From: Blepharisma stoltei ATCC 30299
Lineage: Eukaryota > Protista > Ciliophora
NCBI GenBank assembly: GCA_965603825.1
Contig: CBFDEM010000042.1
Coordinates: 1-64,000 of the forward strand
Direction: 5' to 3'
Length of the DNA stretch: 64,000 bases
Part shown: one piece after another, positions 21,582 to 52,475 of the stretch
How positions within the stretch are numbered: the stretch's first letter is position 1
Layout: every line of letters starts with the position of its first letter
Notes under the pieces: model-generated
What the model was told of the DNA's origin: nothing
The model's database searches: none
What the model saw: only the letters and a program-made list of their open reading frames with translations
Position numbers and translations under genes: made by a program

Positions 21582-21656
21582 GTCAGAGGCCAGGACTCGA
21601 ACCTGGGACCTATCGGCCTGAACGACAATATGCTCTACCAACTGAGCTACCTCTGA
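21582..21656 (-). ncRNA. tRNA-like gene A (75 nt) with aberrant anticodon arm
   Basis: TCAGAGG-TA-GCTC-AGTTGGTA-GAGC-ATATTGTCGTTCAGGCCGATA-GGTC-CCAGG-TTCGAGT-CCTGG-CCTCTGA-C. Perfect acceptor, D and T arms, intact A and B boxes, downstream T-run terminator. The anticodon region is 2-3 nt too long. Confidence 0.85.
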
Positions 21657-21723
21657 TATCAAAGATTAATAATTCAAGATGAATTTATTTATAAAATCTC
21701 ACCAAATAAAAAATGCAAAAGGG

Positions 21724-21795
21724 GTCAGAGGCTGGGTTTCGATCCCAGTTTTCCGGGTCCGAAATTCCGGCGTGCATCCATTATACTACCTCTGA
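21724..21795 (-). ncRNA. tRNA-like gene B (72 nt) with aberrant anticodon arm and initiator-type T loop
   Basis: TCAGAGG-TA-GTAT-AATGGAT-GCAC-G-CCGG-AATTTCGGAC-CCGG-AAAA-CTGGG-ATCGAAA-CCCAG-CCTCTGA-C followed by CCCTTTT. Acceptor stem identical to gene A. Confidence 0.8.
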
Positions 21796-22177
21796 ATGTG
21801 TATTTTTAGCTTTAAGGACTTAATTTAGATGTAGATAATTTGCATATCATCATTAGCATTTAATAAAAAATCATATCTTTTATATCTATTATTTTATAAT
21901 TATTTCAATCTTGACTGCTTTCTTCATTATTTATTATATTTTTTTTAATAATTCTTTATTTAGCCTTTATATAATAAAATGTATTAGCTCTAGTCACAAA
22001 AATACTCCCATTCTTAAGCCAGAGGCAATTATGACTAGAATTGCAAATTTAGGTTCTCTTTTAAAATTTTTTATATATGGCTATGATAATTTTCATTATT
22101 ACCTAAGATTAGCTGCTTCTTTTTGATAAAACAATTATTTGATGAATAACGACCAATTTTTAATGAAACTTATTAAA

Positions 22178-23857
22178 ATGTCCAGCCTTGAAAACCTTAA
22201 ATCTCAAGGACCCTCAGAAATAGAAGGCATCCAATCCCTTCTTCAAGTAGCTGAAGGTAAATCCTAAAAAGAGCTTTTGTTTTCATTTCCCCTCCCAACA
22301 GAAATCGTCACAAAATACGACACAATGCGCAGCAAATATTTCCAAAAACTAGGAATTTCGTCCTCATCTTCCCACATTTGAAAGCTCCAGCGAGATGCTC
22401 ATGCTAAAAGTCGCTCCAAAAGTCCAATTCCTGATAGAAACACAAAATCTTTTGACTCAATAAAAATTGAGCTAGAGTCCCGAATTGACAAAAGCTATTT
22501 ACTAATCTCGAAATATAAAAAATTAGTAGAAGATGTGATGTATTACCAAGATAAACTAAATCTGCAAGCAGGGTTGATTGCAGAAAGATCGAATAGGCCC
22601 AGAAGCCAAAGTCCGTTAAAATCAAGCCTGGGATCGAACCAATATGACCAAACTTTGAGGGTTTTTGACTTAGGAAGCTCTTCGTTACAAAAATACCAAA
22701 TCATTGAGAGCGAAGAAGAGTCAAGTTTTGAGGCTTTAAAGCAGCAATTTAATGAAAAAAGTAGACAATCGTTTATTATTATGGATGATGTACGAAATCT
22801 ATTTGCGAAACAGGTAGCTACTATTTCTGGATATGAAGATAGTATTAAAAAATTATCGAAAAGAGAGAACTCTGATAGAGAAGACTTCGAAAATAAGTTT
22901 AACCTGCTAGCATTGAAATATAACCAAACTAAGGAAGAATATGAGGTTAAAATCAAACAATTAAGAGAAGAAGCATATAGCACAAGACAAAATTACTTAG
23001 AAGAAGCAAGAAAATCGCACATAAAAGATATTGAAAAACTAATGCAAGAACGAGACCAATATAAAGAAAAAGCTGAGCAGCTTCAACAGCAATACGACAG
23101 TGTGAAATTTTCGTTAATGGAAGAAATCAATCGAATCAATTACTCATATTCCAAGGAAATCGAAACCTTAACACAAAAATGTACCCACGAAATCAAAGAC
23201 AACGACAGTGCCTATCAATCAGAAATAAACGCACTAAAAAATAAGCAAAAAATCCGCGAAGAAGAGCTCCTGCATAAGCTTGAATCAATTGCAGAAGAAG
23301 ATGCCAAAACTATTCAAGCGCTCAGAGAAAGCTTAGACAATCACATTCGGTCAGAAGAAGAATTAAAAACTATGATCCGGACTATAGGTGAAATCTCTCA
23401 TGGGATTTATTGAAAATATGGACGCAGTGATGAAGAGCAGGCAAATAGAAGAGAAAATATATATGAAAAATTCTCCTATTATGGAGTTTGTGAGTTTACC
23501 GATGTGCTTGTAGAAATTGACTATTTAGGCTATTTAATTGGCAAGCTAAGCACAGATAATAACTGGCTTGTGGATAGACTAGGAGATTTTGGGAAAGAAA
23601 ATGACACGCTAAAAGCTGCTATATACTCAAAAACTCCAACCCCTAAGAAAATTAGGGAAGATGCTCATAGGAAAACCCATTCAGAGCTGAAATCTACAAG
23701 CAAGGCTATGAAAGAGTTTGAAGACGCAAGAGATAAACTGATAGAAAAAATGAATATTTCTGAAGGACCAAGAAAAGAACCGTCTAGTGTTACAAAATTG
23801 TATAAAAAATATATTGGAGATAGAGGAAGGTCACAAAGTTTTGTTAGAGGAGAGTAA
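22178..23857 (+). CDS. Long coiled-coil protein (~554 aa); one 15-nt intron (22257-22271)
   Basis: ATG 22178. Intron gtaaatcctaaaaag contains an in-frame TAA. Two TGA=Trp codons join the ORF pieces at 22535 and 23504. Confidence 0.8.
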
Positions 23858-24616
23858 AAATAAATTTCTATCTTAAACTGATTAAATGTAAAATCTATAT
23901 GCGCAAGCTTACTTCTCGGTGATTTAAGAATAGTTAAATTTTTCGTTGGAATAAAGCTAAATGGCTATTGCTTAAATGAATTCTGAATTTTTATTATAAC
24001 AATGAAAAATTCATATAAGTATTTTAGAAGATTATATCGATAAAATGGCTTAGAATTTTGAAAGTTTTTTTTTCAACAGTCGGTTATAGAATCTGTAAGT
24101 AAAAACCTCTACTTTATCTAAGCTATAAGCTGTTACTTTAATTCTTTCCGTCTTATTCTTAATCTCAGAAAATGCTTATTTTACAAATTTTCGAATTTCA
24201 TTTTATGGCTTTTATTTTCACGATTTCTTCACAAATAGCATTAAGAAATGCATACAATAATTTAATTAACCATCAAAGAATTTATTTAGATCCGAAAAAT
24301 TATTTTTTATAAACCAGATAATACATTTGCTTATATTTTTCTTTATCTATTAAATTACTTAAGTAATAATTGAGCCCTTTATAATTACAAAATCTTATCC
24401 TAATTTTGATTTCAAGCTCTCACAGCTATTTTCTCTTCAAAATAGAATTAAAAAAACAATCCATCAGATATGTCAAATTAAAATATTAACGCATAAAAAC
24501 CTAAAAATTTAATAAATCTAATAACTTTTATCTGAACAAGTGCTGGTCCATTTAAAATTATTAGAGTAAAGATGAATTTTAATCGGCAAACGAATGGCGC
24601 ATAGTGAATTCTAAAT

Positions 24617-27499
24617 ATGGTTAATAATTCTCAAATGATGGATAATCTTTCCCTCAACGAAGCTCAAGTACAAGAGCTCGAAAAAGAACTTGAAGAAAAC
24701 CCTTTCAATATCCGCGCCCTCAGTGAGCTGGCTCAATATTTTGCAAGTCAAGGGGACTATGCATCAGCATGCCAGCACTACGAAAAAATTGTCAGGGTAG
24801 ACGAAGAGAACGGTAAGGCCTGGACCGCCCTCGGCCATTGTTACCTTCTCAAAGGTGAGTACCAGAAATGTTTCACTGCCTACCAGAAAGCCTTGTATAC
24901 TATGGAAGACAACCGCGATCCTCAGTTGTGGTATGGAATTGGCTTACTTTACAATAAATTCGAAAGTTACGAGTACGCCGAGCCCGCTTACCAAGCAGTT
25001 TTAAGGATCGACCCCAACTTTGAGCAAAAGCACGAAGTCCTCTACAAGTTGGGTCTGATCTATAAGAAGACCAAATCCTTTGATAATGCTATCACATATC
25101 TCAGAAATTCCATGGCCTGTGAAAATGTCCCAATTTCACGAAAAGTTGATGCCTTGTGCCACATAGGGAATTCCTATGAAAAACAGGAGAAAATGGACGA
25201 GGCAATCAGCATTTATAGGGAGGCGCTCACTTTGGATGAAAATAATTTCAAGACGATGGAGTACTTGGGCTGGGCACTGATGATCCATTCAGACCACGAC
25301 CAGGCCTTGGAGATTCTGAATCGGGCTCTTGAGTTCGTCAAAGAAAACTGTGCAGAGGCAGGGGATATCCACTACTTGATTGGGAGGTGCTATTTGGACC
25401 TCAAAAACTACCCAGAAGGCCAGTCCGCTTTCCAAAAGGCCATTTATAAAAATCCAAACGCCTACATCTACTGGTGCAGCATTGGGATTTTATACGCCTT
25501 AGCGACCCAGCCACAAGACGCCTTCGAGTGCTTTGTAAAAGCATCAAACATTTCCCCTGAATGCGGAGATGTCTGGTTCAACATGGCAGTCCTCTATGAG
25601 CACTGCAAACAAAAGCAAGAGGCAAGCTTGGCCTATCAGCGAGCTTTTAGTCTAGACAGCACAAATAAAAAAGCTATTGACAGGAAAACCAAGCTCCAAG
25701 CTGGTGACGAAACTTCCCCAATCCCCGATTTCATCCACCCCGCCTTTGAAGTAAGTGACATTCCTTTCTCAATTAAAAAGAACGACAAAGCTTCCAAGCC
25801 TATCAAAACGCTCCCAGACATCAAAAATTTCAGAAGGGACGGAGAAGCTGAAGAAGAGAAATTCCAAGACGCTGAACAAGATGAAGGCAGTCCTACACAA
25901 GAAGAAGCAGAAGTCAAAAATGAGAAGCCTGAAGAGGAAGAAGGAGAAGAAGAAGGAGAGGAAGAAGAAAGTGAAGAAAGTGAAGAAGAGGAAGAAGACG
26001 AAGATGAGGACGCATCCATTAAAAGTGATGATAACTCAGAGTCTGAAGAAGTGCCAGCTGAAAGTCTGAGAAGAACAGAAGGCCCGAGAACGAGAAGAAG
26101 GGATGAGATGCAGAATAAGAAACCAACTCCTCAGTCAGCACCTGTGCAAGCTCCTCAGCCACAAAAGCCAAAACCACCACAGCCTCAACCTCAGCCTTCT
26201 CCTCAAGTTTTAGCACCTGTGGCTGCTCCTCAAGCACAACTTTCTTCTTTAGCCCAGTTCCAACAAATGTCTCAAATGGCTTTCCAGCAGAGACCTCAGC
26301 AGAATGTACCCCAGCAAGCTCCAAAAATGGCTTCTCCAATGGGGAATCTACCTCCTCAGCCAAGCAAAACTCCGCAGATGCCAACACCATCAAAACCTCA
26401 AATGAACTCTCCTCCTGGCTTCCCACAAGGAATGAATCCATTTGGAGGGATGCCAAACTTCCCGATGCCGCCAAACATGCAAGGGATGCCAGGCATGCCT
26501 AACACAATGCAAGGTATGCCAAACATGCCTCAGATGCCTAATATGCCAGGAATGCCAGGTATGCCGAATTCAATGCAAAACCTTCAAAATCAGTCTCAGT
26601 CCAATCTTTCCTCAGGAGGGATGCCTAATTTCCCACTCCCGCCCAACATGCAAAATGTCCAGAATATGCCGCCAAATATGCAAAACATGCCAAATATGCC
26701 AAGCATGCCTAACATGGGCAACATGCAAAACATGCCCAATATGCCTAACATGCAAAACATGCCCAACATGCCAAATATGCCTAACTTATCAAACCAACAG
26801 CCTCAAAACGTACAAAATCCTAACATGCACCAATTCCAAGGAGGAATGCCTAACTTCGGAGTCCCTAATATGCAAAACAACCCCAATCAAGGAAATATGC
26901 CAAACTTCCCTGGGCTTCAAGGTATGCTAGGAATGCCTGGAGGGCCAAACATGATGATGCCTGGAATGATGGGAATGCAAGGACAGCCTGGTATGATGAT
27001 GCCACAGCAGCCAAACATGATGGCTATGCAAGGGCAGCCTCAATCTCAACAAGGTGGCCAGTCTAACCAACAAAAAGGAGCAGTCCCTGGCTTCAACCCT
27101 TACCAAATGGCAGCCCTAATGATGAATCCTATGCTGGCAGCTCAAATGATGTACGGAATGGGCTCAGTCCCAGGGATGAACCCTATGATGCCACCAGGCA
27201 TGGGAAGTATGCCCCAAATGGGCGGCATGCCTGGAGGATTTCCAGGAGGCATGCCAGGCGGTATGCCAGGAAATCCACCACAAGGTATGAATATGGCCAA
27301 CTTAATGAATAGCATGAGAATGCTGGCACAAGCCCGACAACAAATGAACCCTCAGAATCCACAGAAAAAAGAGCACGACGAGGACATCGCAGAAGCATTG
27401 GCAAATTTGAACGAAAAAGACGAAGACGAAGATGGATCAAGGAAAAGAAAAGGAGACAGTGACAAAGATTCAGCAAAGAAAAAGAGGAAAAGGAAATAA
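24617..27499 (+). CDS. Ssn6/Cyc8 (UTX-type TPR) transcriptional co-repressor-like protein with acidic linker, M/P/N/Q/G-rich low-complexity tail and C-terminal NLS
   Basis: About 10 N-terminal TPRs with Ssn6-like motifs (AWTALGHCYL, AYQKALY, DPQLWYGIGLLY, YWCSIGILY, VWFNMAVLYE); ends KKKRKRK. Confidence 0.88.
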   Translation: MVNNSQMMDNLSLNEAQVQELEKELEENPFNIRALSELAQYFASQGDYASACQHYEKIVRVDEENGKAWTALGHCYLLKGEYQKCFTAYQKALYTMEDNRDPQLWYGIGLLYNKFESYEYAEPAYQAVLRIDPNFEQKHEVLYKLGLIYKKTKSFDNAITYLRNSMACENVPISRKVDALCHIGNSYEKQEKMDEAISIYREALTLDENNFKTMEYLGWALMIHSDHDQALEILNRALEFVKENCAEAGDIHYLIGRCYLDLKNYPEGQSAFQKAIYKNPNAYIYWCSIGILYALATQPQDAFECFVKASNISPECGDVWFNMAVLYEHCKQKQEASLAYQRAFSLDSTNKKAIDRKTKLQAGDETSPIPDFIHPAFEVSDIPFSIKKNDKASKPIKTLPDIKNFRRDGEAEEEKFQDAEQDEGSPTQEEAEVKNEKPEEEEGEEEGEEEESEESEEEEEDEDEDASIKSDDNSESEEVPAESLRRTEGPRTRRRDEMQNKKPTPQSAPVQAPQPQKPKPPQPQPQPSPQVLAPVAAPQAQLSSLAQFQQMSQMAFQQRPQQNVPQQAPKMASPMGNLPPQPSKTPQMPTPSKPQMNSPPGFPQGMNPFGGMPNFPMPPNMQGMPGMPNTMQGMPNMPQMPNMPGMPGMPNSMQNLQNQSQSNLSSGGMPNFPLPPNMQNVQNMPPNMQNMPNMPSMPNMGNMQNMPNMPNMQNMPNMPNMPNLSNQQPQNVQNPNMHQFQGGMPNFGVPNMQNNPNQGNMPNFPGLQGMLGMPGGPNMMMPGMMGMQGQPGMMMPQQPNMMAMQGQPQSQQGGQSNQQKGAVPGFNPYQMAALMMNPMLAAQMMYGMGSVPGMNPMMPPGMGSMPQMGGMPGGFPGGMPGGMPGNPPQGMNMANLMNSMRMLAQARQQMNPQNPQKKEHDEDIAEALANLNEKDEDEDGSRKRKGDSDKDSAKKKRKRK

Positions 27500-27660
27500 A
27501 TTTATGTAATTAGTGTCACTCGTTATTTTATAATAGGTTTCATTAAAGTGTCTTTTGTTGGCTTCAAAAAGGCATTTTCGGATAACTTTATATAGCCTTA
27601 TATTGATTTTATATGGAAGATGTAACTTTCATATTGCAATAAATTATATTTAATTCAAAA

Positions 27661-28491
27661 ATGATGGAAAGGTCAGGACAAAGATTTGGTTCCAGCAAGC
27701 CTGTATCCGAACAAGAGCTCATGCAAGCAAGACACTGTTTAAGACTCCTCAAAGACAAAATAGCTCGAAATCCTCCTGCATATTTCCGTGAGAATGGAGA
27801 AGAGCCTGAACAAGTCCAGCCAGCTGCTTCCAACTATCGCAAAGCTTTTAAACCAGTCACAAACAACCAAGAAGCGCCTATATCTCGCCCTCCGATTTAT
27901 CAAGAAACCCCACCGCCTCGAGCACCTATGAAAAAGCCTCAAAACGTCGCTAAAGAAAGCTCAAAAGGGTTCGCTCAGTATGATTTCGAATCAGTCGAAG
28001 GCGCTGAGCAGCCAGGACAGGAAGACAGGGTTTCTTGCCCTGATTGCGGGAGAAAGTTCGCCCCAGAGTCCTTTGAAAAGCACTCAAGAATTTGTAAAAA
28101 AGTATTTATGAGCAAGAGAAAAGAATTTAATTCGTCTGAGCAAAGAGCGGCAGATGAAGCTGCCGAAGTTCCTAAAAAGTCAGCCCCGCCACCTAGAAAG
28201 CCAGCAGCGAGTGGGAAAAATAATAAATGGAAAATGCAGAGTGAGCAGCTAAGGGCGAATATGAAAGCTGCTAGGCTTGCAGGGTCTGGAAATGATAGTG
28301 CAGCATATGAAGAAGCGGCAAGAGCTGCTGCGGAGTTAAATCAGGATCAATATACTAAGTGTCCACATTGTGGAAGATCGTTTAACGAAGATGCTGCGAA
28401 TAGGCATATTCCGATTTGCGCGAAAAAAGCTATGACTGAACAGTTTAAAAAAGGAGGAAAACAGCCACCTCCAAGAGCTGGCAAAAGATAA
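27661..28491 (+). CDS. C2HC zinc-finger protein (ZC2HC1-like)
   Basis: Two CPxCGRxF...H..IC fingers plus VF.SKRKEFNS and KWK.QSEQLR motifs. Confidence 0.9.
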   Translation: MMERSGQRFGSSKPVSEQELMQARHCLRLLKDKIARNPPAYFRENGEEPEQVQPAASNYRKAFKPVTNNQEAPISRPPIYQETPPPRAPMKKPQNVAKESSKGFAQYDFESVEGAEQPGQEDRVSCPDCGRKFAPESFEKHSRICKKVFMSKRKEFNSSEQRAADEAAEVPKKSAPPPRKPAASGKNNKWKMQSEQLRANMKAARLAGSGNDSAAYEEAARAAAELNQDQYTKCPHCGRSFNEDAANRHIPICAKKAMTEQFKKGGKQPPPRAGKR

Positions 28492-28547
28492 GATAATTTT
28501 AGAAAAAATTGATATATGAATAATTAAGGTTTTTCAGAGTTCATATT

Positions 28548-29720
28548 ATGAATTCGCATTTAAATGGAATTGTTTTAAGTGACCCACAAATTGATAGAGA
28601 AAAGTTTTTACAAGGAATTTCTGCAAGAAAAATTCATCACTTGACCTACGAAATAAATACAAAAGACCCTATAACAAATTCACACATAATTTTCCACCTA
28701 GAAGAATCTGATGTAATTCCTGACTCGATATCTCAATATCAATGCATTTTACTTCTATATTCTTTGAATGAGGAATCGACATTTTCAAACATTAAAGAAG
28801 TCTGACTGCCAGAAGTGCAAGCCTCAATACAAAACGAAAATTCCTTCATTATTCTTGTTGGGCTTGAGTATGGACCTCATCGTCAAATTGATTCAGATGA
28901 GGCAGAAAATTTAGCGACAGAGGCTGGAGCAATCCATGTAGAGATTTCTCTTTCAGCCAAGAAAAACATCACGCTTCTCCTCAGATTAATGAGAGTAAGA
29001 GCTACTTTACTATTAAAAAAACAGCCCATTAAATGTGAATCTTCCCAAAAACCAAAAACTCCTCAAAAAAGAAACCTCGATCTAAATTCAATACAAAAAA
29101 TAACCCTAGAAGATTGCATAACCCCACAATTCAGCTCAAGAACTTCCAAGCAAGAAGAAGCTCATAACTATTCCCTTATAGAAAATCAGAACCATTTGCA
29201 TAGAAAATATCGCTATGAAGACGAACAAATTTTTCAGACTGAGCCTTCCCAAGAATCAGATTCAGATAGTTTTACCAGAAATGAAAAAATCAATAAATCA
29301 ATAGAAAAAGAAATTACTTTGGGCGAGGACTTTGAGAGTGAAAACTGTTGGGCTATGAATGGAACCTTAGGAAGCCCATCTTATCAGCAGCAATATAAAG
29401 TGCCACCGTTATCATTAAATCCAGTTATGCCGCCTATTAAGCAAGCTCAAACAACAGAAAGAGCGTCAACTCCAAAAAAAATTTTAAAAAATGGGCCTGA
29501 GACAGAAAGGCCTTATAAATGCCCATTATTGATATTAGAGATTAAAATGAGAAATTCTGTAAAATCAATCGAGGTTTACCAAGGAGATACCTCATATGAT
29601 TTAGCCAAAAAAGTATGCGGGAATGAAGAGGAGGCTGAAGAGCTGAGCTATTGCATAGAGCAGGAGATCAATAGCTATTGTGAAGAAATAAAGAAAATAC
29701 AAAGAATGGGAAAATTCTAA
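28548..29720 (+). CDS. Protein with degenerate Ras/Rab-fold N-terminal domain (pseudo-GTPase), 390 aa
   Basis: Two ORF pieces joined via TGA. ILLLYSLNEESTFSNIKEVW(TGA)LPEV...IILVG...RQIDSDEAENLA...HVEIS resembles the small-GTPase core, but the G1, G3 and G4 motifs are absent. Confidence 0.7.
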
Positions 29721-29791
29721 TTTTCCCACACAAAAATCGCTATTTATATTATATTTCTTATAAAATTTGAATTCTTAAAATAATTAAAATA

Positions 29792-32254
29792 TTAGCTTTT
29801 AGCCCCAACAGCCCCAGACCTCATAATTGTTTTATAAAACTCCACCAAAGACTGTTCTTCCTCATTTTTATGCTGTTTGGCAATCATACTTTGGTTTTTA
29901 ATTGTATTTGTTGCCTGCTCATAAGCTTCATCCAAGCATTGGTTCAACCAAATTCCGTCGTCTTGAGTAGGCCTTATCCCTAAGGTTTCAAGTTCATTTT
30001 TAATGTCTAAGAAAAGTTCTCCTTTCCTAAAATCAGGATACATGCGGATTACTTCAAGTTTTTGCTTTTCTTTTGGCAATAAATCAACGCTGTTTACATC
30101 AGCTAAAGATAGGCAGCAAAAAATACTAGCCCTTAGGTCGCGTTTTCTTGCAAACTCAAGCTGTTTTTTCCTGAGAATTGAGACTTCACTTTGCTGGTCT
30201 GCAGCTTCTAAGGTCTCTTTGAGGGTTTCAAAGCCTTTGGTATTATTTGATTGTGAATAAGCTAGTGGCCTCCTTGGGTCTTTTAAAACACCGTCTACAT
30301 CATAGGCAACGCCAAGTCTTTTTTCTTCCTCTTCGTATATTCTTATTAATAACTGCGACGCGTTTGCCATGTTCTTTTTGGAGTTTCAGCTTGAAAATGC
30401 AGCTTTGGCACGTGAAATTTTCAATAAATGGCATAGGCAGCTGATTGCGATTCTTCTGTGGACTTCTAAGCATTCATCTAAATAATCAAGCAAAGCAGTA
30501 ATTCCTTCTATATCAATAAAATGAAGAGTCGATCTTTTATTTTGCAAAATCGCATGCCACAAGCAATCCAAAACTGCCAATAAAAATTGGTCAGGCTCCC
30601 CAGTCACTATTGGTGGCATCGGCTTTATGTTTGCCTTAATCAGCTCAATCCAGCCTTTTCTTCTGATTTCTTTTTGGTTTTCTCTGCAGTTTTTGCAGGC
30701 ATTTGATATGATTGACAAGGCAAGTTCTCTTGCAAAAAGCGGGTAATCAGCTTCACTCTGCACAATGTCTAGCAAAGTATCAAAAAGTCCTTCTTCTGCC
30801 AGCTCTGTCTTGAATTCTTGAAATTGTGAGGCCACTTCCAGCGCTTTTAACGTGGCGAGCTTTCTTTCATTATCACTATAAGACGACAGAAAATGGACCA
30901 GACAGTAATTTCCATTTTGCTGCTGGAAATGTTCAGGGAAAATAGGCAAAATATGGAAAATTGTGTTTAGTGCATGCATTTGGATTTCTTTAAGCTGGGG
31001 CTGCTGCCATCGAGAAATGGCTTGGTTTTTTTGGCTTGGGTCTAAATAAAGTAGCAGGGCTGGCAAAAAGTCACTGTTGACGACTACTTCAATTGCCGCA
31101 TCAAGCTTGGAAGAGATTATTCTTGACGTGCAGGTCCATAGCAGCTTTTTCAGCTCTAAATCTTCTGGCTCAACCCCCCACATTGCTTTATTCGCAGAAA
31201 TCGTACTTGTGGTCCCTGCGACTGCTAGATTTAGCTCATCATATGAACTGAATTTAATTAATTCTTCCAAAAAACATTCAGGGGACTCTTCTCTGCTTAA
31301 AAAGAAAGCATGGGTTTCTGGACATGCCACAACAGCAGAAATTAAAATCATAAGCTCGTTTCTCAGTTTTCTATCAGTCAGCTTGTAGCCTTCCTTTATA
31401 ACTCTTTGTAAGCACCATCTGAGTGAAATGATAAGTTCTTCTCTTGCAAGTGTTTCTATGCATTCGTCGCCTGATTGTTCAAGGATATTCCAAATACACT
31501 CAATACATAAATTTACCAATGGGTCTCTAAAATTTGGATGGTTACATATCACAACTACAAGGTCTTTTAAAACCCCAAGCTCTCCAATTTTACTTGCTAA
31601 TGGGGCATACATAGAAAGTGCGAGCATTGCGCTCACTGTTTGTGCTGCAATTTCGTTTTCTGTAACATTGTCTGCTAAAATATGGACAAGGCCTTCTGGA
31701 AGCTCTGTAGCTGCAATTGCTTTAAGGTATTTTGTCCCATTCGTTTTTATCACTGCTAGCACGTTGGTTTCCCAGTTGTCTAAAGACTTTGACCTTTTGG
31801 ATTTCGACAAAGAGCTCTCAGCTGCATTTTTTTCTGCAGTTGTTGCTATATCTTTTTTGGCGAAATCAGTGATAAAGCTGCAGACGCACAGTAAAAGCTC
31901 TTTTATTGGCTCTCTTTCTGGCTTTAGTATTGGGTAAAGAACATTTAAAAATTCTGGGAGTTTTGGGACATAAAGAGTTTCATCACTCATTTGCTCTTTT
32001 CGGAATTGGATTTTGCAGTGGTTGATAAGTCTGCATAGAGGCTCCACTAATTCTTTGCTGCCTTCTTCTATACCTTTATTCAAGAGTTTGATAATCTCTA
32101 TGACTTTGTCGAGGTCTTTATAATAAAACCCTTCAGCATACTGAGATTTTGTTGAGCATATTCTTCGGACCATGGCTGCATGTCTGTCTTTTAGCTGAGA
32201 GGTGTGGCGTGAAGTCATAAGCTCGATAGCTTTTTCAAGGGAAACGTTACTCAT
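29792..32254 (-). CDS. CFAP69: Cilia- and flagella-associated protein 69 (ARM-repeat), 820 aa
   Basis: ORFs 30386..32254 and 29792..30370 are in frame through one TGA. Motifs such as GFYYKDL, ECIWNILE, EGYKLTDRKLRNEL, EDLELKKLLW, W..PQL.EIQ.HAL, LDCLWHAI, EEE.RLGV and DLRASIF resemble CFAP69 as I recall it. Confidence 0.8.
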
Positions 32255-32363
32255 TTTAATTATTATATGAAATTTTGCATTTTTATTATGTTGAAATTAA
32301 CTAAATGCTATTTTTAAACATTATTTTTAAATAGTGCATTAACGACTCTTAAATAATCTTAAA

Positions 32364-33476: not shown

Positions 33477-33547
33477 ATTTTTGAAATAAAAGAAATCTTG
33501 TGTTTTAATCTGATTTTATAAATAAAAGCTTTATAGGTTTTCAAGCT

Positions 33548-33587
33548 GACTGTTTGGCCGAGTGGTCTAAGGCGCCAGCTTCAGGCG

Positions 33588-33622
<35 letters not shown>

Positions 33623-33627
33623 AGTCA
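33548..33627 (+). tRNA. tRNA-Leu(CAG)
   Basis: GACTGTT acceptor, GCC/GGC D stem, CCAGC-TT CAG GC-GCTGG anticodon arm (CAG at 33582-33584), long variable arm, GTGGG-TTCAAAT-CCCAC, A73, T-run terminator. Confidence 0.95.
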
Positions 33628-34307
33628 TTTTTTATTTTTTAAGAATTTCGAAGTTAAAGTGAAAAATATGTAGAAGATTAACGGTTTGGGAGATAGCGTA
33701 TTACTACTTCAACTAGCTTCATGTTTTGATTGTGATTAAAGATTGTCATTTTTAAAATTATATTTTATATAAGCTATGAAAATTATAATTGATCTTATAT
33801 GTATTTGATTTGGCAATACTTTTTATAAAAATGTGTATATGCTTTTATTAATTAATGTCCATGTGCATTTATAAATAATAAAGTTGCGAGAGTAAAATAG
33901 CTCTAAAAAATCTATATTTACAGAAATGATTTTAGAAGTTAAAAGCGAGTATTTTCTAGCATTAATGCCAATGATGAGGTATAAAACTGCCAATTAAGTG
34001 AAGCAAGAAAATAATTAAATGCTGAACTCCCTATAAGAGTATGCTATTCCGAAGAATTTAGAAATTTCATTTAGCAACAAAAGATTAACTCAAGAAGTAA
34101 AGCTTGAAATAATCGAATTGCAAGAAGTCTATTTATTCAGGTTTTGATAATGAAAAGAATAGCATTAGTCACATAGATATAAGTCTTGAACCATAAATTC
34201 AAAGATTACACAAATCTTAAATAAAAATTAGCTAATCACTTCAGCTAATAACAAAAATGATAATTTTTATTGTCTAACTCTTAGGGTCGATATTGAAATT
34301 GGTTATC

Positions 34308-43300: not shown

Positions 43301-43967
43301 TAGCCTCTCCTACTTGGAGATGAATAAGATAAATAGATACCATCATTTGGAGAGGGGATGCAATTATTAAGCTGAGCTTGAAAAATCCTCAACAGATTTT
43401 GGCGGTGTCAATTTCTAATATATTGACTCCTAAGCCTTCAGGAAGTTTGGCAGCTTTTAATACTTTGGCATAAATCACATTACATAAGGAATTTTTAACT
43501 TTTATTTCAATAACTTTATCATTGAAAATATGTCAGCCTTTTACAGACTGATCTAATCCGGCAACTACTAAAAAAGCTATTATAATAAAAATCCCTGTCA
43601 TTATAGGCTTATCATCGCTTTGCAGGTAAGAAATAAGGACTTTGATAAATAGTGGAGCAGAGAAATTGAAGAGAGAAGACAAATTTCCGATGAACATAGA
43701 AAAAAGTAATAGTTTTCAATTAGAAAGAATAAGGGCTCAAAATAGTTTGTATCTTTCTAGGAAATAAGTCAGGTTTTCTTTTTCAATAGATATGCTATCT
43801 GGCAAAGGATAAGCATCGTCTATAGACGCTTCAGCCTTTTTACCAATTAATAAGACTGGCTTAACTCAAGTAAAATAGGCTCTAGAGAAAACGCTAGGAG
43901 CTTTATGTGGAGTTGAGAAATAAGCATAAGGTATGGGTTCAGGCTGATTCAAGGGCTGTAGCTCCAT
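40380..43967 (-). CDS. ABCC/MRP-type full ABC transporter lacking TMD0, paralog 1 (1195 aa)
   Basis: Single frame from ATG 43967 with several TGA=Trp, including the lasso FTW. NBD1: GPVGSGKS/LSGGQ/LLDDPLS. NBD2: GRTGSGKS/LSAGEKQ/DEATA. Confidence 0.92.
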
Positions 43968-44145
43968 TTATTTATAGATTTAATTAAATATATTTTTAAA
44001 AATAGATAAAATTGATTCTCCATAGAAATTTCATATAAAATCTGAATTCAAGATAATTGGATTTATTAGAATTTTTTCTTAATAAAGATATTACCAATAA
44101 TATTATTAAATTATGTATAATTATTATCAAATAATAAATAAAAGC

Positions 44146-47100
44146 TTAATTAAAGTTATCCTTTAAGCTTTTAAATATAGAGTCTTTTGATAAGAGCACT
44201 TTAGGATTTCCAGCTTCTGATACCTTTCCATCTTGCATCACAATAATTTGATCGCTTTCCATTACTGTCCCTAGTCTGTGTGCAATCGTCAAGATTGTGC
44301 ATCCTTGGAATTTATTTTTAATTAATTCTTGGATTTGATGATCAGTATTTTGGTCAATCCCTGCTGTGGCTTCATCAAATAAAATAATTTTTGTATGAGT
44401 CAGCATCGCTCTTCCTAAGCTAATAAGCTGCCTCTCGCCTGCTGATATGTTTGAGCCGTCTCCTTTTATTTCATAATCTATAGAAAACCTGGTCAAATTT
44501 ACTTCTTTTAGTGCATTTTCTACTTCACCATTGCTTTTTAGTTGGCAAGGATCCAAATTATCCTTTAAATCCCCTGAAAACACTAAAGGATCTTGAGGGA
44601 CAAGAGTGATTGCAGACCTTAACTTATTCAGCCCAATCATTGCAATATTCACCCCATCAATTAAAATTGACCCTGAGCTGATTTCTACTAGTCTGAGTAA
44701 ACATAAATAAATAGAAGACTTTCCGCTGCCAGTTCTGCCAACTAATCCGACCCTTTTTCCAGCTTCAATAGAAAAATTGACCCCTTTTAAAATAATTGGG
44801 GTGTTAGATCTATATTTCATTTGGACATTTTTAAACTCAATTGATGGGAATTGAGGCCAGTTTCCTAGGTTTTTATCCGTGGCTTGCTTATGCGGATTTT
44901 CACTTGTGATGCCCATATATACTTTAGCCCTTTCAACTGAAATCAATTGGTTTTCTAAGTTCGCCCAATCAATAACTAAATAATATATATTAATCGGCAA
45001 AGGTACTACATAAGCTAACGAAAGCCCAACAGCACCTAAAGAAATATTGTTCCTAAACACTACAATTAAGGCAAACATAAAGCACAGCACACCTGAGCTT
45101 AGCAGCCCTAAATTTACAACCAGTCAGCATCTGCAAGCAGACATTGAATATAATAATCGTGAATTTATGTCAATAAGCCTACAATTTTTTATATGGAAAT
45201 TTTGAGTCTGTCTAAAAGTCCTTATGATTTTGGCACCAGACAAGGTTTCTTCAAAATTATTTAAAATCGGAGAATTCGAAATCGCTTCAAGCCTTGTCAG
45301 TTCTCTTGCTGCTCCTAAATACAAGTCTTTTATCTGTAATGAGTAATATACCCAAAAAGGTAAAATCATAATTAGTATTGGGAAATATATTAAAGCCAGA
45401 AACACCATAGATAAAACTTGCCAAATCTGTGCAATGATGCTAGCTGTAGCCCTAGGGACCAGTTCATCTATAGAGTTGAGGTCTTTATTAAGCCTATTTA
45501 GAATCCTGCCTAATGGTGTTACGTCGTAGAATAAATTGACAGGGGCTCTAATGAATGATTTTATCATTTGGTTGTGGATGAATCTTGATGCTCTGTTCCC
45601 AACTACTGCCATTGTTAAAACAGCTCTGATAAAAGCAAAAATAGTGCCACCAACTCTGAATAGTATATATAAAAGTAGATAAGTTTCTGTGCCATCTGGG
45701 TCAGTGCTCCATTCTTTTAATATAATATCTGCTATCATTCTGGTGGCCGCCCAAAGGCCCATTGCTAAAAATGCAATTGAGATCATTAAATATCCTCCTG
45801 AGTAGCCAAAATAGTCTTTCAAAATTTTTATATTGACCTTTCCTGATTCTTTGTCTTCGTCTTCTATAAGTTTTGTATGTGTAGAATGCATTTCTTCGAT
45901 TTCAGAAGACTTGTGGTCTTCAATGTCTTGGGTTATCTGCAAGGAGTCGGGGGATGAATTTTCTATGATCGAGCCATTTTGAAGCACAATGACACGGTCA
46001 ACTTTATTTAAAATGTTTAGGCGGTGTGTAACTAAAATCCTCGTTTTTTGAGATAATACATTTAAAAAGCATTTATTCATGATGTGAGTTGCAACAAAAG
46101 TATCTACTGAGCTTAAAGGGTCGTCTAATAAATAAATGTCTTTGTCTGCATAAACAGCTCTTGCAAGGCAAATTCTTGCTTTTTGGCCTCCACTGAGATT
46201 TATCCCTCTTTCCCCAATTTCAGTTAAATCTTTATTTGGCAGAGAATTTATGTCTTGGATTAGGCAGCAGGCGTCAACGACTTTTAAATACCAAGCCTCA
46301 TTGTAAGGCTTTCCAAACAAAATATTGTTTCTTAAGGAGTCATTTTGCAGCCATGAATCTAAGGACGGGGCATATGCAATACTATCAGTTACCTTTATAA
46401 CCCCTTCCTTTACCTTAAGTTCCCCCATAATTCCATTTAATAACGATGATTTTCCACTCCCAACAGTTCCGACTACTGCAATAAATTCTCCTTTATTCAC
46501 CTTCAAGCTAATTCTATTTAAAACACTTTTGTCTCCATACGCAAGCGTGCATTCTTTTAAATCAACTGTATCTGAGCTTGGCAGTCCTTCTAAATCAGGC
46601 AAATCGATTAGTCCTTGCATTCTTCTGCAGCTTACAATGCACATCATAACTTCTGACACAAGCCAAGGAATCTCCTGCAGAGAGTCCTGCAGTATCAATA
46701 AGGTTGATAAAGTGACAAAAGCAGTTCCAGGATCCAAAGACTTTTCCATCACTAATGTGTAATACATAAACACTGCAGCTGCAGTTATACTGGGGACTAT
46801 CCAAAAGAAAAAATATGTAGTTCCTTGCAATATCTGCAATTTCCTCAAAAGTGACAGTTCCCTCACCCTTGCATCCTCAATTTTCTTTTTAAAAAACTTT
46901 TCCCACACATAAGCCTTAATCATTTTTATACTTGCGAGCATCTGAGTTGTCGCTTCAACGCGTCTGTCCCTTACACTCATAATTCTGCCTGAAAATTTCC
47001 CAACAGCTCTCGTAATGACTGTATTTAGGCTTAGGCAAATAGTTAGTGTTGCTAAAGCTGCATATACCGCATTTCCTACTTGATAATATATCAAATACAT

Positions 47101-47730
47101 TGATAAACCTGCCTGTAAGGGGGTTGATATAAAGAGGCTTAAATCTTTGAAGCCATCACAAACTTTTTTGACGTCGACTTGCAGAATATTCACTCCTGTG
47201 CCTTCAGGAATTCTAGCAACTTTTAGCACTTTGCAAAAAATGGCATTTGATAGGGAACTTTTTATTTTGATTTCGACTAGCTGATTTGTCCATAAAAACT
47301 GGCCTTTTAAAACTTGGGTTGTTAGGGTAACAATTGTGAAACTTATAGCCAGCAGAATTCCAATTGACAAGAACTTTTCTTGAGTTTGTAAGTAAGAAAG
47401 CAAAAATTGAATAAAAAGAGGTGAAGAGAAATCAAAAAGAGAAACGAGATTCCCAAGCATAATCGCCTTGGATATAAGTTTGATATTAGAAAAAAGCAGT
47501 GATTTGTATAATGAATAGCGAGATAAATAAGAAGTTAAGGTCTCGTTTTGAGACGAGTGTTCGTCTGGTAATGGGTATACATCTTCTGGGGTTAATTTGT
47601 TTTTCTTGCCTATTGAAAAAATTTGCTTTGCTCAGGAGAAAAAAATGATAGAGGATAGGCTGGAAGAAGAAACTAGTGGAAAGTAAGGAGAAGAGCCTTC
47701 ACCTTGTGTGTTTAATGGTTGAAGCTCCAT
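44146..47730 (-). CDS. ABCC/MRP-type full ABC transporter, paralog 2 (1194 aa)
   Basis: ATG 47730 (MELQPLN); pieces 45124..47460 and 44146..45090 joined through TGA; same motifs as paralog 1. Confidence 0.92.
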
Positions 47731-48443
47731 CAGATGAGAATAATAGATTATCCATATTTCATGAAGGAGAAAAGTTAGTGATAAATCAAAAGGTCTTGAT
47801 AACTATAAGAACCGTTCTTAATTTGAAAGACCGAGCTATTTATATAGATAATTATAGTAAAATTCTATAACTTAATGAACAGCTTTAGAGACGAGAAGCA
47901 CAGTTTTTAGAGAGTCGTTGTGAGCAGAAGGATGGCTATATAATTTTTAAAGGTGTTTTAGCTCATTACGGATGGCTTTTTAATATTAAGTTGAAATAAA
48001 TAAATACATAAATAATTAAGAAATAGGTTTAAAATCTTGAGTTTTTAAGAATTTGTTATAAATCGCTTAAAACTTTTGAAGTACATACTTAATAATTTGG
48101 TGCATTTTAAGTAGCAATCAAAACTTAGATCGGGCTAAATATTATAGGTCCTCCTATTAGCATATTTTATTTGCTTTGTTTTTTCTCTTTTTGAGATGCA
48201 ATTATACCAGTTTCCAACTTGACAGCTTAAGCACCCACATGCATAACTTATTTTTATTTTATTGAGGCAAAGTTGAGTATTATGCTTAAAGTATTTTAAA
48301 ACTATTTTTATCAAATTATTAAAAATACAATTTTATTCATAAAAAACAAATAGCATAATTTTATTAATTAATTTTTAGACTTATAGAGCATTGCCATGCA
48401 CGAAATTAAAATAATTATAACTAGACAGGTAAATTTATTACAA

Positions 48444-51400
48444 TTAATTAAAATTATCTCTTAAATTCCTAAACAAAGAATCCCTAGAAAGCAGCTCTTT
48501 GGGACTCCCCATTTCAGCTACAATCCCATCTTTCATGACCCAAATCACATCATTTTCCATAACAGTCCCTAACCTGTGTGCAATAGTCAGTATCGTGCAC
48601 CCTTTAAATTTATTTTTAACGACTTCTTGGATTTTTAAATCATTGTCTTGATCAATCCCAGCAGTCGCTTCGTCAAATAAAATAATTTTTGTATGGGCCA
48701 GCATTGCTCTACCTAAGCTTATAAGCTGTCTTTCACCAGCTGACAGATTAGACCCGTCTGACTTTATTTCATAATCAATAGAAAACTTTGACAAATTCAC
48801 TTCCCTTAGCGCCTCTTGTATTTCTTCATGGCTTTTTATTTTGCAGGGATCCAAGTTATCTCTTAGATCCCCAGAAAATACTAATGGGTCTTGAGGGACA
48901 AGGGTTATTGCAGATCTCAGCTTGTGCAGCCCAATCATAGCAATATTGACGCCGTCAATAAAAATTGTCCCAGCATGAAGCTCAACTAAGCGTAAAAGGC
49001 ATAAATAAATAGATGATTTCCCGCTGCCAGTCCTCCCAACTAGTCCTGCTCTTGTCCCAGCTTCAATAAATAGGTTTACTCCTTGCAAAACAAGAGGAGT
49101 ATTTAGTCTATATTTCATATAGACTTCTTTAAATTGAATAGACGGCTGACTAGGCCAGTCCTGTAAATTTTTGTCTGATGATATTTCATTAGGATTTTCT
49201 GAAATTATATCTATGTACTGTTTAGCCCTTTCTACAGCAATAATCTGGTTTTCTAAGTTCGCTCAGTCCCCTACGAGTCTTAAGATGTTGTGAGGCAAAG
49301 GCACAACATACGCAAGAGACAGTCCTACAATGTCAATTGGGACATTATACCTAAAAATAATTACAAGTGAAAATAACACCCACAGGACAGTTGAACTTAG
49401 CAGCCCTAAAGTCACTGAAAGCCAGCATTTGCAAGCAGCTTGTGAGTACAATAATCTTGAATTTGAATTAATTAGACGATAATTTTTCTGTTTAAAGTTT
49501 TCGTTCTGCTGAAAAGTCCTGATGATTTTTATTCCTGAAACAGTTTCTGCATAATGATTAAGGATTGGAGAGTTCGAAATAGCCTCAAATCTCCTTAGCT
49601 CTCTTGCCGCACTTAAATATAGCTCTTTTATCTGTAAAGAATAATATACTAAAAAAGGCAGTAATAGGGTAATAATAGGGAAATATATTAAGCCTATAGT
49701 CACCATTGAAGCTACCTGACAGGTTTGAGCTATAACAGCAGCCATTGCGCCTGATATATTTTCATCGATAGAGTTTAGATCCTTATTAAGCCTATTCAAA
49801 ATCCTGCCTATTGGTGTTACATCGTAAAAAAGGTTTACTGGAGCTTTAATAAAAGACTCAATCATTTTGTGATGCACAAATTTAGACGCGCTGATTCCTA
49901 CAACTGCCATCATTAATAAAGCTCGAATATAAGAAAAAATGTTTCCTCCAACTCTGAACAGTAAATATAAAGGTAAATATTCATCAATTCCGTCAGGGTT
50001 TGTGGTCCAATTTTTTAATATGATGTCTCCTATCATACGAGTTATAGCTCACAGTACCATTGATAAGACTGCAAGAAATGGAAAAAAATAGCCTCCAGAA
50101 AATTTAAAATAGTCAATATATAAATGGCTGTTAATTCGTCCGAGGACTTTTTCTTCTTTTTCGATTAATTTTGATTGCTGAGGTGCTGGCTCTTCTATTT
50201 CAACTCTACTAGTTTCTTTGATTTCTTCTATTATTTTAATTTTGTCAGGAGAAGAGTCATTTTTAATAGAACCATTTTGAAGTAAAATGACCCGGTCAAC
50301 TTTATTTAAAATATTTAGGCGGTGTGTAACTAAAATCCTCGTTTTTTGAGATAATACGTTTAAAAAGCATTTGTTCATGATATATTTTGCAACATAAGTA
50401 TCTACTGAGCTTAAAGGGTCGTCTAATAAATAAATGTCTTTGTCTGCATAAACAGCTCTTGCAAGGCAAATTCTTGCTTTTTGGCCTCCACTGAGATTTA
50501 TCCCTCTTTCCCCAATTTCAGTTAAATCTTTATTTGGCAGAGAATTTATGTCTTGGATTAGGCAGCAGGCATCAAGCACTTTTAAATACCAAGCCTCATT
50601 GTAAGGCTTTCCAAACAAAATATTATTTTTCAAAGTATCATTCTGTATCCACGAATCTAGTGACGGGGCATATGCAATATTATCAGGGACATTAATAAAT
50701 CCTTCTTTTATCTTCAACTCTCCCATAATACTATTCAGCAGTGACGATTTCCCGCTCCCCACTTCTCCAACAACCGCCACAAACTCCCCTTGTTTTACCT
50801 CAAGACTAATATTTTTCAAAATATTTTTGTCCCCATAGGCAAAAGTGCAATTTTTCATCAAAATTTTGTCACCTTTATTCGGTTCGTCTAAATCAGGCAA
50901 ATCAATCAAACTTTGTACTCTCCTGACGCTTACAACACATATTAGCAGTTGAGATACTAGTCATGATAAATCCTGCAAAGAATCTTGTAATAAAAGCAGC
51001 GTGGTTAAGGTAACGAATGCGATTTCTGGGTCAAGTTTTTCTTTCATAACTACTGTATAATATACAAAAACAATAGCAGCTGTGATACTAGGTATCACTC
51101 AGAAAAAGAACCTAGAAGTTGCAAGAAAAAGCTTTATTAACCGTAAAATACTTAACTCACTTGCCCTGATGCTGTTTATTTTTGTCTTAAATACGTTTTC
51201 TCATACACAAGCTTTAATCATTTTTATATTAGTCAGCATTTGTGTGCTGGCTTCTATACGTTTGTCTCGGTGTGACATAATCCTGATAGAAAATCGCTGG
51301 ACTCTTCGAGCAATAAACATGTCCATAGCAATGCATATAATTAAAGTCCCAAGGGCAGCAAATACAGCATTTCCTACTTGTTGATAGATTATATACATTG

Positions 51401-52034
51401 ATATCCCAGCTTGCATAGGGCAAGTAATAAACATATTTAAATCTCTAAGACCTTCATAGATTTTTCTGACGTCAACCATAAGGATATTTACTCCTAAGTT
51501 ACTAGGAATTGAGGCTGCTTTTAAGAGTTTTGAATAAATTACGTTTGATAATGAGCTTTTTACCTTTAATTCTATCAATTGGTTAGTTCATGAAAATCGG
51601 CCTTTTACAAGCTGATTTATTAATGTGACAAATATATAGCCAAGTAATAAATAAAGTCCTATAGATAATGGTTTTTCTTCAGATTTTAGATATGCAATGA
51701 GGAGCTTAATAAAAATAGGGGATGAGAAGTCAAAGACTACAACAATGTTTCCAAGGATAGTGACTAATAAGAGGAGCTTTCAGTTTGATAAAAATAATGC
51801 TTTAAATAGGCGGTGCTTTGAAATGTAGGTGGTTAAATTTTCGTGCTCTATTAAATGTTCATCAGGAAGAATGGGGATGTCATCTTGCTCAAGCTTCAGA
51901 TTTTTTCCTAATAAAAGCATGGGCTTTACTCATGTAAAAAAAAGCATAGAGAAAAATCCTGGAGATCGGGAAGGGACTGGGATATAAGGGACAGTGATTT
52001 TTCTTTGTGGCCCAATTTCTTGAAGCTCGAGCAT
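48444..52034 (-). CDS. ABCC/MRP-type full ABC transporter, paralog 3 (1196 aa)
   Basis: ATG 52034 (MLELQEI); ORF pieces 51201, 50049, 49263 and 48444 are all in frame, separated by TGA. Confidence 0.9.
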
Positions 52035-52402
52035 TTTAATTTAAATAATCAATATTTTTCAGATAATTATTTACATTAATTATAAAAGTTCTGAATAATA
52101 AATTAAATATATAAATCTAAACAATCTCATTTTACTTCTTACTCCCCAATCTTTGGACCTTGGCACATCTCCTGGCTTTAAGATCGATTCAAGTGTAATA
52201 CAAAATGCTAAATATATCTCTTTCTTTTTTCTTCATGAATTTCGAGAGATAGACTTTAAGCGAAATCCCAAAAAGACATTTTTCTTTATAAACAAATAAC
52301 TAATTTGAGCCCTATTATTTTTGAGTTATGTACAAACTTTTTAAATTTAAATATTTTCTGATGAAGAAAATAAAATTTTAGATCAAAGCATATAATTAAG
52401 CA

Positions 52403-52475
52403 TCAGGGGTAGCTCAGTGGTAGAGCGTTCGACCAGCAAGACGATCGGCCCCAGGTTCAAATCCTGGTCCCTGAC
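52403..52475 (+). ncRNA. tRNA-like gene C (73 nt) with aberrant anticodon arm
   Basis: TCAGGGG-TA-GCTC-AGTGGTA-GAGC-GTTCGACCAGCAAGACGATC-GGCC-CCAGG-TTCAAAT-CCTGG-TCCCTGA-C, then TATTTTT. D and T arms are nearly identical to gene A; the loop contains no U at all (no U33). Confidence 0.85.

Follow-up and report, generated by a model that had tools for sequence, protein, structure and literature searches.

Three tRNA-like loci of Blepharisma stoltei belong to a conserved heterotrich family of tRNA-shaped RNA genes with an enlarged anticodon-like loop

The window, i.e. the whole 64,000-nucleotide stretch of DNA that was analysed, is MAC Contig_47 of Blepharisma stoltei ATCC 30299. ARAGORN and the Rfam model RF00005 find three tRNA-like genes in it, called genes A, B and C below. 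They lie on the window together with their 3' trailers as follows:

21582 to 21656, minus strand: gene A, 75 nt, UCAGAGG acceptor, C73, canonical D and T arms
21560 to 21581, minus strand: 3' trailer of gene A, T4 from 6 nt past C73, then a T6 run
21724 to 21795, minus strand: gene B, a tRNA-like gene of 72 nt
21708 to 21723, minus strand: 3' trailer of gene B, T4 from 3 nt past C73
52403 to 52475, plus strand: gene C, 73 nt, UCAGGGG acceptor, G7-U66 wobble, C73
52476 to 52486, plus strand: 3' trailer of gene C, T5 from 2 nt past C73

With RF00005 the three genes score 49.9 (A), 33.5 (B) and 46.8 bits (C), all above the gathering score of 29 bits, and with model R1 they score 71.5, 71.5 and 75.3 bits, respectively. 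Each has the RF00005 cloverleaf with a 7-bp acceptor, a 4-bp D stem, a 5-bp T stem and a T loop of the GTTCRANYC type. The original prediction had described these loci as tRNA-like genes with U1-A72, UCAGRGG, C73, paired T arms and T-runs, and ARAGORN, RF00005 and our reading of the sequence agree with this description. Of the A and B boxes that it had assigned to all three, those of gene B are weaker, whereas genes A and C have good ones. Gene B is the most diverged of the three, with one D-stem mismatch and the T loop AUCGAAA; given the mismatch and the weaker B box, it could be a decaying member. Its T stem differs as predicted, with pairing kept: CUGGG/CCCAG is a compensatory change relative to CCAGG/CCTGG in genes A and C. 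The trailer of gene A is of the Pol III terminator type. The contigs of three poly(A)-like RNA data sets stop at 21431-21475 and do not reach the genes; these data are uninformative on small RNAs.

In the source data of a 2023 preprint the three loci are entered solely as Leu-CAG, Ala-AGC and Undet, the underlying tRNAscan-SE calls being 'Leu CAG 56.9' for gene A, 'Ala AGC 49.8' for gene C and 'Undet, pseudo 25.2' for gene B (bioRxiv 10.1101/2023.10.09.561518). For genes A and C the identity elements disagree with the isotype derived from the anticodon. Neither label is credible: gene A has a 4-nt variable region without the long arm of Leu tRNAs, and gene C has A3-U70, not the G3-U70 of Ala.

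A genome search with model R1 gave 13 matches at 68-88 bits, followed by tRNA-Asp at 56 bits. There are 12 intact paralogs in the B. stoltei genome, genes A, B and C among them. In addition, we found a single relative whose arm is canonical and two copies that are visibly broken (Contig_22:410083-410153 and Contig_5:362305-362359), which carry deletions, unlike the intact members. Among 13 paralogs 98.1% of the cells in the acceptor, D and T helices are paired, and double-sided changes occur in 11 of the 16 pairs, a result equalled in 0 of 500 shuffles; such statistics overstate independence, because the paralogs share ancestry. The D stem retains 96% pairing at a sequence identity of only 50%. 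Identity among paralogs is 90% in the acceptor, 45% in the loop and 33% in the variable region, and conservation is highest in boxes A and B and in the 25 nt at the 3' end. The combination of U1-A72 and C73 is present in all family members and absent from all 44 canonical tRNA types that were examined in B. stoltei, and the nearest canonical relatives are tRNA-Asp and tRNA-Glu. T-runs start 0-6 nt past position 73 across the copies, which matches canonical tRNA genes. The flanks, compared by eye as printed, are unrelated between copies, and a by-hand check of locus coordinates against contig ends revealed no bias towards the ends. A role of the 3' end in providing a primer-binding site was considered and rejected: its complement with CCA does not exceed control level in the MAC genome (for the 3' end, 6 one-mismatch matches versus 3 in the reversed control). 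A search of viral contigs for the family gave no match.

The anticodon arms of the three genes depart from the canonical 5-bp stem and 7-nt loop and consist of 3-5 bp with a 10-nt loop:

21611 to 21630, minus strand: anticodon arm of gene A, 5-bp stem UAUUG/CGAUA, 10-nt loop UCGUUCAGGC
21753 to 21770, minus strand: anticodon arm of gene B, 4-bp stem CCGG/CCGG, 10-nt loop AAUUUCGGAC
52428 to 52445, plus strand: anticodon arm of gene C, 3 of 4 stem pairs in UUCG/CGAU, 10-nt loop ACCAGCAAGA

These are exactly the loops that had been proposed from the window, and they fall into the register of all 15 family copies (12 from B. stoltei and three environmental ones, described below), each of which fits a single 4+10+4 arrangement. 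In this register 53 of 60 cells of the 4-bp stem are paired, compared with 16-30 in slid registers and with a mean of 22.8 and a maximum of 38 in 5000 shuffles, which are subject to the same shared ancestry. The stem is closed by an invariant G-C pair, and the loop has the consensus A-N-Y-U-N-C-N-R-A-N. Position 6 of the loop is C in 15/15 copies and position 4 is U in 11/15; therefore, the anticodon-like triplets are NCN. The loop thus keeps its U33-like, C35-like and R37-like positions in a frame with three bases too many. The arms had been predicted to be scrambled and unrelated to each other, which proved wrong, since the stem position, loop length, closing G-C pair, C6 and, mostly, U4 are shared.

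Loop positions 4-8 of gene A are U-U-C-A-G, with the triplet UCA in the family register; ARAGORN and tRNAscan fold this arm differently and obtain CAG. The triplet is UCG in gene B and GCA in gene C. Over the family the triplets correspond to Arg (UCU, UCG, GCG, CCG), Cys (GCA), Trp (CCA), Ser (GCU), Gly (UCC) and UGA (UCA), the last being borne by gene A and by a copy on Contig_7. Loop positions 5 and 7 differ among paralogs and are the same between species. For six members the arm can also be drawn with a bulged A and a fifth pair, leaving a normal 7-nt loop.

Three further copies, at 79-83 bits, lie together on a contig of an uncultured ciliate that groups with the Blepharisma and Stentor clade and whose proteins are 49-59% identical to those of B. 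stoltei. Their acceptor and T arms are identical to the family and their anticodon arms match it. Two arm types are nearly identical in the two organisms. For the pair c18 and M2, identity is complete in the acceptor (14/14) and in the anticodon arm (18/18), the D stem agreeing at 2/8 and the variable region at 0/4 positions; between c2_82909 and M3 the loop is identical at 9/10 positions and the stems are compensated. The uncultured ciliate has no in-frame UGA and its genes end in TGA, so UGA reassignment is not a condition for having the family. The environmental cluster shows no synteny with the B. stoltei family loci, and four related environmental contigs contain no family member. Two other metagenome matches were rejected as chance matches to bacterial-type tRNA fragments. 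Orthologs of genes A, B and C themselves were not found in another species, and the cross-species evidence comes from other subtypes. When a flanking 182-aa ORF was used as an ortholog probe it matched only itself, a second contig being the same strain in another assembly, and an exact look-up of five neighbouring ORFs returned none on record.

The three loci are genuine members of a conserved heterotrich-ciliate family of tRNA-shaped RNA genes. The suggestion that selection acts on their structure holds up well in view of the 98% pairing, the double-sided changes, the terminators and the copies in a distant ciliate. Judging from the sequences, genes A, B and C are not decaying pseudogenes, as the helices are retained and the family is conserved beyond close relatives. 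Moreover, the loop itself appears to be under selection, because two arm types have been kept almost letter for letter between genera. A function residing only in the acceptor/T half, as originally proposed, does not fit this conservation of the arm design.

The advice to consult the Blepharisma literature was well founded. Swart et al. 2023 describe CCA-tailed 'tRNA-like molecules' in Blepharisma, namely Contig_39-tRNA-like(UCA) and three on Contig_1, which are reported to be abundant, modified and CCA-tailed by YAMAT-seq and of which other Blepharisma species have orthologs, with a conservation well above the rate of the flanks (bioRxiv 10.1101/2023.10.09.561518). These molecules and the present family come from the same genome and share U1-A72, C2-G71, C73, a YCRGG-UUCRAYU T arm, the 4-bp stem with a 10-nt loop and immediate T-run terminators. 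The central loop C aligns as invariant in 19/19 sequences (15 of the family and four of Swart et al.), and one of the Swart et al. loops differs from that of a family copy on Contig_42 by a single base. Model R2 recovers both sets and nothing else above tRNA-Asp. There are also clear differences. The D arm is reduced in the Swart et al. molecules, whereas genes A, B and C have a 4-bp stem and a GG-containing loop; the former were missed by tRNAscan-SE and the latter family is called as assorted isotypes; the triplet is UCA in all of the former and a diverse NCN in the latter. Expression and CCA addition have been demonstrated for the Swart et al. molecules alone, the present family being known from sequence. 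The 2023 paper drew no link between the two sets and did not note the shared arm design; among the synthetases of B. stoltei it does mention a second TrpRS. The present family is a new subfamily of a partly known kind.

Expanded anticodon loops are known from frameshift suppressors with 8-nt loops and from yeast mitochondrial tRNA-Thr(UAG), in which a single base has been inserted into a tRNA whose identity is known. The likeness lies in a larger anticodon loop on an otherwise normal cloverleaf; here, however, a whole multi-gene family, marked by an acceptor signature of its own, has the 10-nt loop as its conserved state. Non-proteinogenic isoacceptors that act as aminoacyl donors, e.g. Staphylococcus tRNA-Gly for peptidoglycan, are likewise extra tRNA genes with features expected to keep them off the ribosome, but they retain a normal anticodon arm and normal synthetase identity. 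Multiple dispersed copies, low tRNAscan scores and 'Undet/pseudo' labels recall tRNA pseudogenes and SINE heads, from which the family differs in its covarying helices and its conservation across genera. A tRNA-derived SINE was rejected: the terminator lies directly past position 73, there is no body or tail, and the flanks are dissimilar. The tRNA-Trp(CCA) that reads UGA, which is also present in Blepharisma, resembles the family in its 4-bp anticodon stem, its C35 and its occurrence in a ciliate with UGA=Trp; what it has lost is the top pair (27-43), and the 7-nt loop and normal Trp identity are kept (Kachale et al. 2023). In the present family the outer pairs are kept, and loss of the loop-proximal pair with one added base gives the 10-nt loop; the acceptor identity is foreign to all isotypes.

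It seems somewhat probable to us that the loci are selectively maintained Pol III-type tRNA-shaped RNA genes of a superfamily confined to heterotrich-type ciliates, with a family-specific arm and a likely role as adaptors or ligands. Because these RNAs retain acceptor, D and T arms like those of genuine tRNAs, RNase P and RNase Z would be expected to cleave the transcripts, and CCA to be added, as YAMAT-seq has shown for the sister subfamily of Swart et al. alone. The absence of U1-A72 and C73 from the 44 canonical types suggests one common partner at the acceptor end and poor recognition by standard synthetases. Since positions 5 and 7 vary among paralogs and are kept between species, each paralog may present a different NCN triplet to some factor; the loop's candidate readers are a protein or, on the ribosome, an NGN or UGA codon. 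The RNAs would most likely be specialised adaptors or ligands rather than standard triplet decoders.

Standard decoding deserves to be weighed all the same. Despite their odd arm the RNAs could be working elongator tRNAs for NGN-box codons, either through a bulged-A stem with a 7-nt loop or through an expanded loop that relaxes decoding, possibly with a part in reading UGA as Trp in Blepharisma. The U33-like, C35-like and purine-37-like positions are what such tRNAs would keep, the triplets of the adjacent M1 and M2 have neither outer base in common and still both correspond to Arg, short anticodon stems have already been tied to UGA reading in Blepharisma, and Swart et al. drew attention to tRNA-likes that bear UCA (bioRxiv 10.1101/2023.10.09.561518). 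Six members can indeed form the fifth C/U-G pair that leaves a canonical loop, but in nine members this pair is impossible. Every NGN codon is already covered by canonical tRNAs, U1-A72/C73 fits no canonical identity set, and genes A and C lack the Leu long arm and G3-U70, respectively. An enrichment for Arg was rejected, as 5 Arg triplets in 15 are at chance level given the fixed C35 (about 6/16). A tie to UGA reassignment is at odds with the uncultured ciliate, which has the family together with TGA stops. We regard elongator function as unlikely.

Slow decay of Asp/Glu-type tRNA duplicates is quite unlikely. It would agree with the nearest canonical relatives, with the broken copies, with the pseudogene calls by tRNAscan for gene B and the Contig_7 copy, and with the concentration of divergence between paralogs in the arm and the variable region, if the arm was inactivated first, avoiding mistranslation, and the ends were kept by Pol III promoter constraint or gene conversion. 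The 3' acceptor strand, however, lies outside the promoter and covaries with the 5' strand, and the D stem has kept its pairing at half its sequence identity. Nor would decay leave an arm with a fixed register, a paired stem and an invariant C, whole arms identical across organisms with about 50% protein identity, or terminators retained amid unrelated flanks. Selection could also act on something other than the full-length RNA: the loci may be chromatin elements of TFIIIC/Pol III, or they may yield 3' tRNA fragments (acceptor/T half) that a Piwi or Argonaute protein takes up. This would predict the strong conservation seen in boxes A and B and in the 25 nt at the 3' end, and ciliates do bind 3' tRNA fragments, as Tetrahymena Twi12 does. 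It leaves unexplained the covariation of the D and anticodon stems and the conservation of the loop across genera, and the fragments would have no complementary 3'-end targets elsewhere in the MAC genome; we consider it very unlikely.

Ciliates are the main natural laboratory for changes of the genetic code, and the reading of UGA as Trp in Blepharisma is still debated. At least 16 intact B. stoltei genes encode tRNA-shaped RNAs that share a private acceptor signature and an anticodon-like loop which is enlarged and conserved, and the design is older than the split from a ciliate lineage with standard stops. Scattered odd tRNAscan calls thereby become a defined RNA class. The annotation needs correction as well: 3 of the 49 anticodons counted as distinct in the genome (GAC, GCG, AAA) come from these non-canonical genes only. 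It is possible, if doubtful, that these RNAs form an ancient second class of heterotrich tRNA-shaped adaptors, defined by U1-A72/C73 and a 10-nt NCN loop and charged or bound by a dedicated partner, for use in context-dependent NGN/UGA reading or in non-ribosomal transfer. If this is true, the Contig_47 genes would be its UCA-, UCG- and GCA-type members.

The three tRNA-like genes on Contig_47 are each detected by ARAGORN and by Rfam. Sequence reading gives a UCAGAGG or UCAGGGG acceptor strand complementary to the 3′ strand, C73, 4-bp D stems and 5-bp T stems. T-runs are found 2–6 nt 3′ of these genes as compared to 0–2 nt for canonical tRNA genes of the same genome. The original prediction of three genes with a UCAG(A/G)GG acceptor, C73, paired arms and T-run terminators is thereby borne out, and the 10-nt loops proposed for them are correct on sequence inspection. 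Its suggestion to check the Blepharisma genome literature was right, as the preprint of Swart et al. describes related tRNA-like molecules. The tRNAscan-SE source table of that preprint contains all three genes at precisely the coordinates of the original prediction (bioRxiv 10.1101/2023.10.09.561518):

Contig_47 21656-21582 (minus strand), gene A: 'Leu CAG 56.9'
Contig_47 21795-21724 (minus strand), gene B: 'Undet pseudo 25.2'
Contig_47 52403-52475 (plus strand), gene C: 'Ala AGC 49.8'

This match identifies the window as Contig_47:1-64000 of the macronuclear genome of B. stoltei ATCC 30299. The genes appear in the preprint just as tRNAscan calls, without discussion (bioRxiv 10.1101/2023.10.09.561518), and our literature search found no description of them beyond this preprint. 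A canonical class II tRNA-Leu(CAG) is present at 33548-33627 (plus strand; Rfam 59 bits, tRNAscan 68.9). Thus, the contig has a real CUG decoder, and the 'Leu-CAG' label of gene A is an alternative-fold artefact. The T loop of gene B is AUCGAAA, with A at positions 54 and 60. T loops of this type are otherwise typical of eukaryotic initiator tRNAs; tRNA-Ala(AGC) of the canonical B. stoltei set has a similar A54. Three public runs give poly(A)-type RNA contigs in the stretch 21400-21475; they stop at 21431-21475, about 100–150 nt short of gene A, and these ends are probably the mRNA 3′ end of the gene at about 20758-21306.

The B. stoltei macronuclear assembly (G000; 41.46 Mb, 64 contigs numbered C1 onward in lexicographic order of the Contig_N names) was searched with a pattern and with a covariance model (R1) for which the acceptor, D and T helices were the sole basis. 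This model gives 13 matches at 68–88 bits; the next scores, after a clear gap, are 56 bits for tRNA-Asp(GTC) and 48–49 bits for tRNA-Glu. The anticodon arm is non-canonical in 12 of the 13. The members and related copies are:

Contig_47 (three), Contig_2 (three, tandem), Contig_18, 7, 39, 42, 43 and 11: the 12 members with a non-canonical arm
Contig_22:410325-410395 (C15:410325-410395), minus strand: the 13th match, family-like body with a normal 5-bp/7-nt arm, Glu-UUC
Contig_22:410083-410153 (C15:410083-410153), minus strand: broken copy, one base deleted from the 3′ strand of the acceptor
Contig_5:362305-362359 (C45:362305-362359), plus strand: broken copy that retains the family loop AAGUCCAAAG but has lost the arm's 3′ half, the variable region and most of the T arm

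The 13th match has a UCUGAGG acceptor, C73 and a T arm identical to that of the family, and may represent the ancestral state joining the family to Glu/Asp-type tRNAs. The '49 distinct anticodons' reported for B. stoltei (bioRxiv 10.1101/2023.10.09.561518) include GAC (Val), GCG (Arg) and AAA (Phe), which the tRNAscan-SE table has solely from Contig_2.trna5, Contig_43.trna4 and Contig_39.trna5, all family members.

An exact-pattern scan of JGI metagenomes revealed three tandem family copies (M1–M3) on the 167-kb contig PR_CR_10_Liq_1_inCRDRAFT_1000001, flanked by two DEAD-box helicase genes; the identical locus is on the 193-kb ENA contig k141_46427. Two further pattern matches were rejected as chance matches in bacterial-type tRNA fragments. 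The host contig is very gene-dense and eukaryotic, from an uncultured ciliate-like organism (43% GC; intergenic spacers mostly <100 nt, often <30 nt), and its proteins are 49–59% identical to those of B. stoltei, the top named match. In a GH31 tree the host groups with the Blepharisma+Stentor clade (support 97/95). The three copies score 79–83 bits with R1, which shows conservation of the family outside B. stoltei; searches from neighbouring ORFs gave no orthologs of genes A, B or C themselves. Host genes have no in-frame stops and end with TAA, TGA or TAG. Since this organism uses TGA as a stop, the family is not tied to UGA reassignment.

The original prediction regarded the anticodon arms as scrambled and mutually unrelated. 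This does not hold for the 15 members (12 from B. stoltei and M1–M3). With only the spacing to the D and T stems fixing the register (position 26, 4 nt, 10 nt, 4 nt, variable region of 4–5 nt), all share a 4+10+4 layout in which 53/60 stem cells are paired (shuffle mean 22.8, maximum 38 in 5000; slid registers 16–30). All 15 have G-C as the innermost pair, and the weak pair is the third; gene A has one additional outer pair. Conserved loop bases are C6 (15/15), U4 (11/15), A1 (10/15), A8 (9/15) and A9 (9/15). For six members, though not for the other nine, the arm can also be drawn so that one A bulges out, a fifth C/U-G pair forms and the loop has 7 nt. Taking U4 as the U33 equivalent, loop positions 5–7 read NCN in all members:

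UCA: gene A and the Contig_7 copy
UCG: gene B
GCA: gene C and three other members
ACA, CCA, UCU (twice), GCG, CCG, GCU, UCC: the remaining single or paired cases

M2 and the Contig_18 copy are identical in the acceptor (14/14) and anticodon arm (18/18) but match at only 2/8 D-stem and 0/4 variable positions; M3 matches Contig_2:82837-82909 at 9/10 loop positions, and the stem changes between them are compensatory. Therefore, the loops are under purifying selection, which contradicts a function confined to the acceptor/T half.

Swart et al. reported six loci without tRNAscan predictions yet with high YAMAT-seq coverage, including Contig_39-tRNA-like(UCA) and three on Contig_1; these molecules have a non-templated CCA, bear signatures of modification and are 93.8% identical among Blepharisma species, as compared to about 61% in the flanks (bioRxiv 10.1101/2023.10.09.561518). 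In G000 they are located as follows:

C33:543665-543736: Contig_39-tRNA-like(UCA)
C1:245791-246829: the Contig_1 trio

Like the family, they have U1-A72, C2-G71, C73 and the T arm, and the 4-bp + 10-nt arrangement also fits; their D arm is reduced, whereas that of the family is canonical. The published Contig_39 loop is one base apart from the family Contig_42 loop, and the Contig_1 'a' arm is similar to the family Contig_7 arm. The central loop C is an invariant alignment column (19/19 sequences). A second model, R2, of the anticodon arm and 3′ half retrieves from B. stoltei exactly these 16 genes (12 family + 4 published), followed by Contig_22:410325-410395 (38.8 bits) and tRNA-Asp (36.4). 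U1-A72 combined with C73 occurs in 0/44 canonical B. stoltei tRNA types. For these reasons we treat both sets as one superfamily.

Across 13 family sequences, 98.1% of acceptor, D and T helix cells are paired, with double-sided changes in 11/16 pairs; 0/500 shuffles reach this level and slid registers are 22–44% paired. Between paralogs the D stem is 96% paired although sequence identity is just 50%. The pattern reflects selection for the structure of the RNA and not just promoter constraint, in agreement with the original prediction. It also opposes pseudogene decay, which we consider improbable. Genes A, B and C are, judging from sequence, very likely maintained, functional RNA genes.

As to what the RNAs do, roles at the DNA level or as fragment precursors seem the least likely. 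That family members decode NGN and UGA codons in an ordinary or relaxed way is somewhat more probable than decay but still unlikely. We lean towards the possibility that the family RNAs are non-standard adaptors, in which the enlarged NCN loop would be read by something besides ordinary triplet decoding.
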